A stretch of 63,937 bases of DNA, filler included, from Choristocarpus tenellus KU-1152 (Eukaryota; Protista; Phaeophyceae), in the NCBI GenBank assembly GCA_964200185.2. It is 14 parts of 14 records of this genome, joined end to end, with 100 filler letters (N's around TTAATTAATTAA, not from the genome) between each part and the next. Parts side by side here need not be neighbours in the genome. Positions count along the whole stretch, not along the records: positions 60,633 to 63,937 come from CAXNAD020020919.1; 13 more parts are not named here. The stretch is one strand, 5' to 3'. Of this stretch, positions 60,633-63,937 are shown in pieces. Below the pieces are notes generated by a model that saw only the letters and a list, made by a program, of their open reading frames with translations, was not told the origin of the DNA and ran no database searches. The translations under genes were made by a program, and so were the position numbers. How positions within the stretch are numbered: position 1 is the first letter of the stretch; each line of letters starts with the position of its first letter.

Positions 60633-60740
60633 TTACCGAAACATTTTGGAGTAGGAAAATTTCACAAAAAAAAACATGGGAAGCCAAGCTCCAAATGGAC
60701 AAATGGGGCAAAACTTGTACCCTCTAAGATACTTTCGCTC
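60633..60740 (-). mobile_element. MITE family A, partial at contig start
   Basis: Ends TACCCTCTAAGATACTTTCGCTC. Confidence 0.9.
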
Positions 60741-61061
60741 ATACGTGTTCACGCAGACTTCGAATTGATTCTTTCTATTTCTTGCAGGACAGATAACCCT
60801 GGTATCTTGTTCTGAGTTTAACCAACTGAGAGGTAGGCAGGGTTGCATTTTGAGAATGGTGAAGGAAGGGAGAAAAGATGCCATTTACAGAGTCTTTGCT
60901 TAATTGTGGTGCCACTTTGTGTGTGGAAAGGGGAGTATCAACTTTGCGTACAACAATGAACGCATGAAACAACGAAATAGAGTGTATTGCACAGGGTATG
61001 AAAGATGTCTTGATGCAAAAGGGTCCAGGCCTGCTGACCTCTCAACTGGTTTGACTCTTTT

Positions 61062-61320
61062 GAGTGAAAGTATCTTAGAGGGTACGAGATTTGCCCTGTT
61101 TGTCCATTTGGGGCTTGGCTTCCCATGTATTTTTTTATGACATTTTCCTACTCCGAAATGTTTTCTGACTAGATAAAATGTATGCGTTGTGAAAAGGTGT
61201 GTCTGGAACATAGATATTTACACTTCCTAACAAATATGATAACTAAAATTACATCAAGTTGCAACATTGAATTTTTACCCCCAAATGGACGCGACGCTAC
61301 CCTCTAAGATACTTTGATTC
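61062..61320 (+). mobile_element. MITE family A, full copy (259 bp)
   Basis: GAGTGAAAGTATCTTAGAGGGTA ... TACCCTCTAAGATACTTTGATTC; flanks TTTT/ATTT. Confidence 0.94.
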
Positions 61321-63521
61321 ATTTATAGTTTTAGGATGTAGCCCCCTTGTGAGACCTCGACCCCACTCTCTGCTTTAAGTATATGTTGATACACACTCGA
61401 GTGAGACCTATTCACAGTAAGTGCATTCACATTCTTCACGAGGGAAAAAGTCTCAGAGCATGCATCACTAACCTACACTACGGAATAGTACTGTACTGTG
61501 TACAGTACGGATCAGCCTCTTGATAGAGCATGTCACAACATACCATCACATTGAATTTCACCGGTGCTTCAGTGCACTGGGCCACCTCTCCGCGTTACAA
61601 TACTACTTCAAGCCTCTACACAGAGCACCTCCTCAGAATCAACGATCGTCCAATTCAAGGTCTTAACAAGTCATGAACCTCACACGATTCAACACCCCAC
61701 CTATTTATTATGGGTCTAACTCCACAATATATTACTAGAGATTTGAAGCAATATCTTGTAAGTAGACGAATTTTTGTTTTACCTGAATAGAAATATATGT
61801 TCACTCACGTTTGTGATCTGCCCAACATTTCTAATTTAATTTGTCAACTTTAGCAGTATAATAAGACTCAAACTTCAAACTCCCCGAAAAACAACTTATG
61901 TATATGTAATAGGGCTCAAAATTCAAAACAACTTATGTATTGACAGATCAACAGACAACTGGACAAACAGGAATTACTTAGTCTTACATGGTACGTCCAT
62001 CACAAAGGAAAATACATATGTATAGACCAATGCCGTTGCTGGTAGCACTTCCTTTATTCAAGATATTTTTAATCTTTGGAACAAGTATGTGCGATTGGAC
62101 AGGTAGGCAATATGTGGGAGGACAAGAGTCGGTACTGGTAATGAGGTGAAGTATACATCCTGTGGAGGTAACCTTCTGGAGCGAGTCGTAACATGGAGGT
62201 CCTACCGAGACTTCCAAGTTGTAACAATGCAGACATACGGGCATATAGACGAATGGACAGACAGGACTTGGTTTAACATGGTATGTAAAAGAAAGGGGTC
62301 CCTAGGGGCCTTTTCGAGGAATAATTTTTGGTAATATTACATCAAAAATAAAACAAGTGTTACAACACGCCCCAGAACTCACCTTCACAGATGTGTAACT
62401 CTAATCCAACAACCTAAAAACGACGCTACGGGGGGGGTACTTCCAGAGATGATGACCACGGATGGTGTCGGGTGATGCTTCGCTCAGTCGATATTTCACT
62501 TTTCACTTTATCAAAAGAGGCTATGGTAAGGATCACAAGTACTGAATTGTGTGGTCAGCAACTGAGCCTTTTATTAACGTCAATCACCGTTTTTCTACAG
62601 CCAAAGAGTTAAATGACATTTGCAAACTGCTGTATAAATTCTCCAATCATAAATCTTCATTCTGGAACTTCCAGGAATTGACGTTTATTCTGTGATGTTA
62701 TGTATGCATTTCGAATCTTACTCTGCATCTTCTATCACTATTCGCCTGTAACATACCCCCCAGCGTGAACTAGCAATACGTGTTTCACGCTTACCACAGG
62801 CGATTATCACCGATGAAGGCAATAGATTTCATCAATCACCTCAGATCATCCTGTAGCAAAGAGAAAGAAAGAGAAAAAAAACCCTAACTCCTACTAGGTC
62901 CAAAACATATATCCTTGTTATTTGCTTGGAGAAATCTGTCTGCGTCTAGCCTAATCTGAGTATACGTTTACTCTTTCTATAGGACAGCTTCCTTGAGGTG
63001 CCAAGTATCATCTGATTATTGCCTGCCTCATGCCCCCCAAGCACGAAGCATACTGACGGCTGCTAGTGCGTAGAACAGGCAATAATCAACATCAGCAACA
63101 ACAAAAAATGAGGCAAGGGACAGAAAAGAGAGGACTCTGAAGAAAGATAAAACGAAAAAAGAAATCAAGGGGATCAGGTACCTGGTCTGACGAAAAGGAC
63201 AGAAAAAAAATGATGCGAGGGATAGTGAAAAAAAAGAATGGAAATAAAATATACAAAGGAAAATAGAACAAAACACGGAATAAAGGGTATTAGGTACCTG
63301 GTCCACAGAAAAGAAAAAAAAATGACAAAAATATGCATCTTATATAAATTACTGTCTGTTCTGATGGAGTTCATTCATGTTTCTGACGTCTGCTGTCTTA
63401 CATTCCATGCAGGGATTATGACTATCAATGCTTGATTCCTGTGTTCTTACATGGATGGGTTAGTCCTCACGTACCTTGTCTTCCGGATGTACAGTGGTTA
63501 CCTGTTGGATAGGTTTTAGGA

Positions 63522-63815
63522 GAAGCGACTCATTTCGCTTTTGTTGAATTCCTCCCAAACTCCATAATTAAATCGTACCCTCCAGTAAGGTGGCTTGAAG
63601 TCAAAAACTGTACCTGTGTACTACTTATTTCTTCCTTTCTCGTCTTTCCACGACTTCTTGACAGTAGTACCTGTGGGGGAAAGGCGTAATGCATCCTCTC
63701 GGGACAAGGGTTTTCCTTGGCGAGAGGTGTCAGTCGGACGTGGGCTCGTGTCTGGATTGTAGAGGTTCCAGAGGGGATGGAAGACATCCAACTGTAGTGG
63801 GGTGAAGCTATCCAT
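63522..63815 (-). pseudogene. Tudor-like domain remnant, probably TE-derived
   Basis: Read through one TAG: GTTVKKSWKDEKGRNK*YTGTVFDFKPPYWRVRFNYGVWEEFNKSEM, resembling YxGxV..YxVxYxDGDxEEL. Confidence 0.55.
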
Positions 63816-63937
63816 ATCTTCTTTTTCAGCTACTCAATCTGACAATTCTCCATTTTGATACTTCCCCTCGTACTCCCTGTGCCATACATTGCATGGCGAC
63901 AATACTGCTTTTCTATCAGGGTCAACGTATCTGGGGG

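Follow-up and report, generated by a model that had tools for sequence, protein, structure and literature searches.

Two-module ends with core-to-box spacers of 17 and 7 nt in an abundant MITE family of the brown alga Choristocarpus tenellus

The window considered in this study is a stretch of 63,937 nucleotides from Choristocarpus tenellus KU-1152, and our inspection, including the count of family A copies, covered its portion from 60633 to 63937. In this portion, positions 61062 to 61320 are occupied by a complete MITE of 259 bp, with its long end on the left and its short end on the right (Table 1). The inverted-repeat search of 60633-63937 delimited TIRs of 23 to 24 nt that are 92% complementary, and inside the 23-nt TIR lies an invariant 18-nt core, AAAGTATCTTAGAGGGTA. 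Each end is made of two modules, since, proceeding inward, the pentamer GAGTG or GAATC is followed by AAAGTATCTTAGAGGGTA, by a spacer, and finally by a 12-nt inner box, GTCCATTTGGGG, which starts at position 41 of the long end and at position 31 of the short end.

The pattern G-N4-AAAGTATCT occurs three times in 60633-63937, at 61062 on the plus strand and at 61320 and 60740 on the minus strand. The box motif GTCCATTT starts at 61102 (plus strand, position 41), 61290 (minus strand, position 31), and 60700 (minus strand, position 41), and the core-to-box spacers of the ends at 61062, 61320, and 60740 measure 17, 7, and 17 nt, respectively. The three matches of the 18-mer core in 60633-63937 compare with 0.02 expected, a 12-nt word common to both arms after the TIR appeared in 1 of 20000 shuffles, and the alignment of the two arms with MAFFT opened one clean gap of 10 nt. 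Furthermore, the hairpin fold of 61062-61320 reaches -37 kcal/mol (z of -5.9), and the partial second copy is 88% complementary to 61054-61163 over 110 nt. Thus, the bipartite ends, TIR plus inner box, that a preliminary description of this DNA had attributed to family A are borne out in 60633-63937, and the coordinates and counts that it gave for the copy at 61062, with the box at 41 versus 31, proved exact.

Table 1. Coordinates of the family A features in the inspected portion of the window
Feature	Position	Strand	Basis or remark
Partial second family A copy, long-end module only	60633..60740	-	Cut at the edge of the inspected sequence
Box of the partial copy	60689-60700	-	Box at 41
Spacer of the partial copy, 17 nt	60701-60717	-	
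Core of the partial copy	60718-60735	-	
Putative 4-bp TSD, left, TTTT	61058..61061	.	3/4 match to ATTT at 61321-61324
MITE copy, family A	61062..61320	+	Boundaries agree with the repeat edges in the reads and with the empty site of a sister copy
Left TIR, GAGTG + 18-nt core	61062..61084	+	Motif count, arm comparison
Long spacer, 17 nt	61085..61101	+	Contains a weak word similar to the box (element positions 32-33)
Long-end box, GTCCATTTGGGG	61102..61113	+	Inverted repeat and shuffles
Short-end box	61279..61290	-	12/12 complementary; start at position 31 from the short end
Short spacer, 7 nt	61291..61297	-	Same length in the three full copies
Right TIR, core + diverged GAATC	61298..61320	-	Family majority pentamer is GAGCC
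Putative 4-bp TSD, right, ATTT	61321..61324	.	4-bp length established in contigs L018 and L020

As for coding capacity, the family A MITE contains only short chance ORFs, for which Pfam and Rfam returned no match. Pfam, Rfam, and tRNA scans of the whole of 60633-63937 likewise gave no match, nor did exact look-ups of four ORFs of the window. A THAP-like reading of the TTTGGGG in the box found no support and was dropped.

Sister copies were recovered through proteins. Two reading frames of the MITE gave no match in word-based protein searches, which also missed CAM9988906.1 (P0002), an indication of their low sensitivity; this unnamed protein product of C. tenellus (GCA_964200185.2) was retrieved from 1.84 billion proteins by means of a profile built on the long-end peptide. 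In the corresponding contig, CAXNAD020021862.1 (L018), a full copy spans 1283-1539; its box starts at 42 in the long end, where a T-run has one T more, and at 31 in the short end. A paralogue of the protein (P0004) pointed to contig L020, where a full copy at 1660-1918 has the box at 31 and 41, while a further candidate (P0001, contig L019) turned out to be a spurious tandem-repeat ORF without MITE and was discarded. The full family A copies of the window, L018, and L020 are 257 to 259 bp long and share 81 to 84% pairwise identity, values that fit copies of a single genome. All three combine one long with one short end (41/31, 42/31, and 41/31), and the claim that the two ends of each element are non-equivalent holds, with an offset of 10 to 11 bp, in 3/3 complete copies of this one family. 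Since all copies come from one family, common descent may be enough to explain why a long and a short end are always combined.

Approximately the last 36 codons of CAM9988906.1, together with the stop codon, consist of the MITE long end (L018:1283-1397), an artefact of the annotation being a likelier cause than exonisation. Paralogy between L018:1-2200 and L020:2095-4006 extends for over 1.9 kb, at 85 to 89% identity; the two regions correspond to a duplicated gene region or to a larger repeat, and the encoded proteins have no Pfam match.

The paralogous site in L020 is empty (...GACGG[ACTT]CGGC...), and the same site in L018 is filled, reading ...GACGG ATTT, the element, and ACTT CGGC.... The comparison of the filled with the empty site gives a TSD of 4 bp and sets the boundaries of the element exactly at GAG...(G/C)TC. 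In addition, the L020 copy is flanked on both sides by a perfect 4-bp duplication, ATTG, and the flanks of the window copy, TTTT and ATTT, agree at 3/4 positions, one mismatch thus being present in 2/3 target duplications. TSDs of 2, 3, 5, 8, and 9 bp, as well as TA, TTAA, and TWA targets, are excluded by the empty site in L020, and no 8-bp match flanks the window copy at 61062-61320.

The abundance of the family was evaluated on Logan contigs of two runs (X1 and X2), which derive from two individuals of one organism and contain the sequence of 60633-63937, aligned to 60633-61420 (788 nt) with at least 80% likeness, which yielded 27191 and 19122 aligned contigs. In run X1, the summed word depth amounts to 2.7 to 3.3 million at the long end (61065-61118), 1.8 million at the short end (61281-61307), 0.3 to 0.6 million in the interior, and 25 to 86 in the unique flank. 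The depth at the ends is therefore 10^4 to 10^5 times that of the flank, and family A-type ends are present in roughly 10^4 to 10^5 copies, both being rough figures, as depth differs from true copy number. The end modules are approximately 5 to 10 times commoner than the interior of the copy at 61062-61320, which fits the existence of several families with common ends. Long-type ends exceed short-type ends in depth by a factor of about 1.8, an excess that could point to the existence of long/long or solo-end elements. Loose ends behind 61163 had been considered as such foldback (long/long) variants, a reading that we rejected because they belong to the same family A interior, with a short internal consensus hairpin. 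In the family consensus obtained from these loose ends, the hairpin lies at 61146-61180 and is formed by CCTACTCCG, an 8-nt loop, and CGGAGTAGG; it is decayed in the window copy.

The same alignments define the extremities of the element, because they stop at 61061/61062 and at 61316/61317, with GCTC as the loose-end consensus behind 61316. It follows that the terminal pentamer belongs to the element, as GAGYG on the long side and GAGCC on the short side. Of the G-N4 terminus initially described, the starting G stands, but the following four positions are not free, as they form, in reads and sister copies, a conserved pentamer owned by the element. Read inward from the end, the majority short spacer in the reads is GAGCCGC (61294 A>G and 61296 G>T with respect to the window), and the flanks in the reads are A+T rich, without a fixed motif. 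In the Logan contigs of both runs, no indel at 5% of depth or more occurs within either end; the spacer length is thus discrete for each end type, and the continuous spacing that the preliminary description had contemplated was not seen.

Run X3 belongs to another organism of the same study, and a single one of its 12.8 million raw reads gave a match to the MITE, which indicates a lineage-specific family, absent or nearly so in that organism. Exact scans with the 18-nt core gave 0 matches in the metagenome set and single matches in viral (14) and GTDB (3) contigs, all devoid of the box and hence attributable to chance.

Pairwise mismatches across three to four family A copies revealed how unevenly the modules are conserved. 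The 18-nt core shows 0/162 mismatches over seven ends, the box 11 to 12% (13/108), and the interior 19% (83/448); the 32 nt after the box differ at 20% of positions. The long spacer, with lengths of 17, 18, 17, and 17 nt, reaches 21%, and the short spacer, 7 nt in each of the three copies, reaches 48%. The terminal pentamer differs at 10% of positions on the long side and at 47% on the short side. The invariance of the core marks it as the predicted primary recognition site, and the persistence of a perfect core in copies that are 19% diverged implies that a good part of their differences accumulated among source lineages that were active and selected for mobility. Conservation of the box exceeds that of the interior only slightly, a difference that is not significant with three to four copies. 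The proposal that spacer length is kept while spacer sequence is not applies to the short spacer; it does not extend to the long one, whose mismatch is close to that of the interior and whose length varies by one nucleotide.

We could also notice that, in 60633-63937, the CpG observed/expected ratio is 0.59 and that of TpG plus CpA is 1.16, and that several differences between copies are changes of CG to TG or CA, such as GAGCG/GAGTG and GTCCGTTT/GTCCATTT. The CpG depletion and these changes together suggest a methylation-driven decay.

The features of the ends allowed us to compare family A with the known superfamilies. The Transib/RAG type was discarded, as it needs CAC termini and a 5-bp TSD, whereas family A has GAG and 4 bp. 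The P superfamily needs an 8-bp TSD, different from the 4 bp seen at the empty site, and hAT needs, besides 8 bp, a YARNG terminus, whereas family A has GAGYG, with the G at position 1. The targets ACTT, ATTG, and (A/T)TTT are not the TTAA of piggyBac and Kolobok, and the 4-bp TSD without a fixed TA or TNA/TWA disagrees with both Tc1/mariner, which needs a TA target, and classic Harbinger, which needs a 3-bp TNA/TWA TSD. Other PHIS lineages are reported without a TSD or with one of 1 to 4 bp, with which the 4-bp TSD of family A is compatible by length. The TSD length of Ginger1/2 (4 to 5 bp) also fits, but Ginger termini are TGT...ACA, against the GAG...CTC of family A.

Judging from these end features, Sola2 appears to be the most likely source of the transposase. 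In fact, it offers the best fit because of the 4-bp, mostly A+T-rich TSD, as in family A, combined with 5'-GAG...CTC-3' termini. In particular, the Sola2 elements DFa-2/3 of Dictyostelium have ends of the type GAGC... and ...GCTC, comparable to the GAGYG and GAGCC of family A. To our knowledge, inner boxes or unequal spacers have not been described for Sola2 ends. Short TIRs are a further common feature, with 12 to 21 bp in Sola2 and 23 nt in family A. As a difference, the three target sites of family A (ACTT, ATTG, and TTTT/ATTT) are A+T rich but do not strictly correspond to the AWWT of Sola2, a group of the Sola superfamily with a DDD transposase. The described Sola2 elements have 4-bp A+T-rich TSDs (AWWT, ATAT, AAAT, and ATTT) and terminal repeats of 12 to 21 bp (PMC3627910), and Sola-2 has been annotated in the brown alga Ectocarpus (PMC12477816).

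Unequal ends are known in other systems. The P element has spacers of 9 and 21 bp, which were called "reminiscent of the 12 and 23 bp" signals (PMC7776569), some Transib elements, with functionally asymmetric ends, follow a 12/23 arrangement, and ProtoRAG has 27/31 (PMC8355894); for piggyBac and piggyBat, transposition in cells depends on unlike ends (PMC7351741, PMC11707139). The P element resembles family A in having a TIR and an internal site with a difference of approximately one turn between the ends; however, its 31-bp repeats start with CATG, its TSD is of 8 bp, and its transposase has a THAP domain, whereas family A has 23 nt, GAG, 4 bp, and spacers of 7 and 17 nt. In piggyBac and piggyBat, as in family A, the same internal repeat lies at different distances from the two tips; different from family A, piggyBac uses TTAA, has CC...GG tips, carries a 19-bp palindrome bound by a dimer of a cysteine-rich domain, and shows a much larger offset. 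RAG/Transib shares with family A bipartite signals with spacers about one turn apart, and the length of its spacers is more conserved than their sequence, but the CAC, the heptamer and nonamer, and the 5-bp TSD are all missing in family A. Thus, of the analogy with the RAG 12/23 signals that had been drawn for these ends, the one-turn offset is confirmed, but the likeness is formal only, with GAG in place of CAC and a TSD of 4 instead of 5 bp. Furthermore, the one-turn layout was overstated as a new concept, as the 9/21 arrangement of the P element had already been likened to 12/23 (PMC7776569).

On balance, we consider it probable that family A represents an abundant brown-alga MITE with two-module ends, in which 17 nt separate core and box on one side and 7 nt on the other, and for which a Sola2-type transposase is the likeliest source of mobility. 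It is plausible that one transposase serves the two non-equivalent ends. In the most likely mechanism, the core, together with the tip, would be the primary recognition and cleavage site, positioning the catalytic part of the transposase, while the box would be bound secondarily, either by a further DNA-binding part of this transposase or by another of its protomers. We infer from the arrangement of the modules that the box is bound by protein and that it may play some role in the pairing of unlike ends. The offset of approximately one turn would leave the box on the same DNA face at both ends but shifted along the helix axis by about 34 Angstrom. The two ends would then form structurally different half-complexes, as those of P elements, piggyBac, and RAG/Transib signals do.

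How far this asymmetry reflects function can be read in different ways. It is possible to hypothesize a strict spacer rule, in which only an end with a 17-nt spacer and an end with a 7-nt spacer synapse, making the family an independent functional analogue of RAG 12/23. The 3/3 complete copies with long/short ends, the lack of a common spacer indel among tens of thousands of end copies, and the short spacer that stays at 7 nt despite 48% differing positions are all consistent with such a rule, as are the offset of 10 to 11 bp, close to one helical turn (compare 11 bp in RSS and 12 bp in the P element), and the need of piggyBac and piggyBat for unlike ends in cells. However, the copies derive from one family, and their pairing is therefore not independent evidence; the depth of long-type ends exceeds that of short-type ends about 1.8 times; a symmetric foldback had been noticed in family C by the preliminary description; and lengths are not rigid, given the 18-nt spacer of the L018 copy and the positions 43-44 initially reported for family B. 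For these reasons we hold a strict rule to be unlikely, and it is equally improbable, in our opinion, that a Sola2-type or unclassified brown-algal transposase enforces the pairing of long with short ends by an independently evolved spacer rule of one helical turn. If the long/short rule were true, a natural mutational record of it would be available in several MITE families, with about 10^5 end copies.

The offset could instead be a historical accident: ancestral imperfect inverted repeats of about 50 nt would have undergone a 10-nt gain or loss in one arm, inherited by families A, B, and C, and the box would be nothing more than the better kept inner portion of this old repeat, with no separate function. 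In agreement with this, the arms realign beyond the 10-nt gap for 12 nt only and then diverge, GAG and CC remnants common to both spacers suggest a common origin, strict conservation is limited to the 18-nt core, and that of the box does not significantly exceed the interior in the few copies available. An accident accounts less well for the short spacer, whose divergence by 48% with no change in length and no common indel in the reads hints at a length constraint, for the end modules, which, box included, are far commoner than any one interior, and for the box itself, which the preliminary description had found in families with different interiors; we judge it rather unlikely, though to be taken seriously. 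A further hypothesis is that the ends differ in the number of sites, the long end having a degenerate box-like unit at 32-33 in tandem with the true box at 41 and the short end a single box (31), the offset corresponding to one extra repeat unit, similar to the subterminal repeats of Ac, En/Spm, Tn7, and Mu, which are unequal in number. In the partial copy, the word at position 33 indeed matches GTCCATTTG at 7/9 positions (5/9 in the full copy), TTTG recurs every 8 to 9 nt in the long end, and the right end of piggyBac differs from the left one by an insertion and a duplication (PMC7351741). Yet the pseudo-box is weak, its conservation does not surpass that of the interior (the long spacer has 21% mismatch), its register is off by 1 to 2 nt with respect to the short-end box, and in a T/C-rich spacer of 17 nt the probability of a 7/9 match by chance is approximately 0.02 or higher, which makes this hypothesis distinctly doubtful.

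Family A is probably an undescribed, extremely abundant brown-alga MITE family, and a full-text literature search for its terminal repeat returned no match, as did one for the assembly accession. Sola transposons have received almost no mechanistic study, and the mobile elements of brown algae have been little explored. The invariant core, the defined box, and the two spacer lengths offer a ready-made substrate definition that may be useful for finding and testing the transposase. Should the pairing of unlike ends be obligatory, the family would be an independent case beside RAG/Transib and the P element and would help to explain the repeated evolution of asymmetry. Moreover, as the MITE family breaks assemblies and enters at least one C. 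tenellus gene model, it matters for brown-algal annotation.

A second MITE-like element of 244 bp, here called Y, precedes the family A copy at 60814-61057, and only TTTT (4 bp) separates the two. It has 28-nt inverted repeats (79%), starts with GAGT, ends with ACTC, and is flanked by TTCT and TTTT; its read depth is 2 to 24 thousand, against approximately 30 in the flank. The termini of Y agree with those of family A at 14 to 15 of 23 ungapped positions, while in gapped alignment the two elements did not score above shuffles and no clean 10-nt offset appeared. It is possible that Y is a distant relative and that a related transposase moves it.

Other repeats were observed further downstream. 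A direct repeat of about 40 nt, with its units at 61956-61996 and 62250-62286 (290 nt apart), ends in CATGGTAYGT, which resembles a 5' splice site, and holds a word complementary to the MITE long spacer plus box (15/16 and 13/14 positions, individually near chance). At 63013-63088, two perfectly inverted arms of 13 nt enclose a 50-nt loop, and the nearby purine-rich stretch at 63140-63322 contains a 67-nt direct repeat (75%), with its units 116 nt apart.
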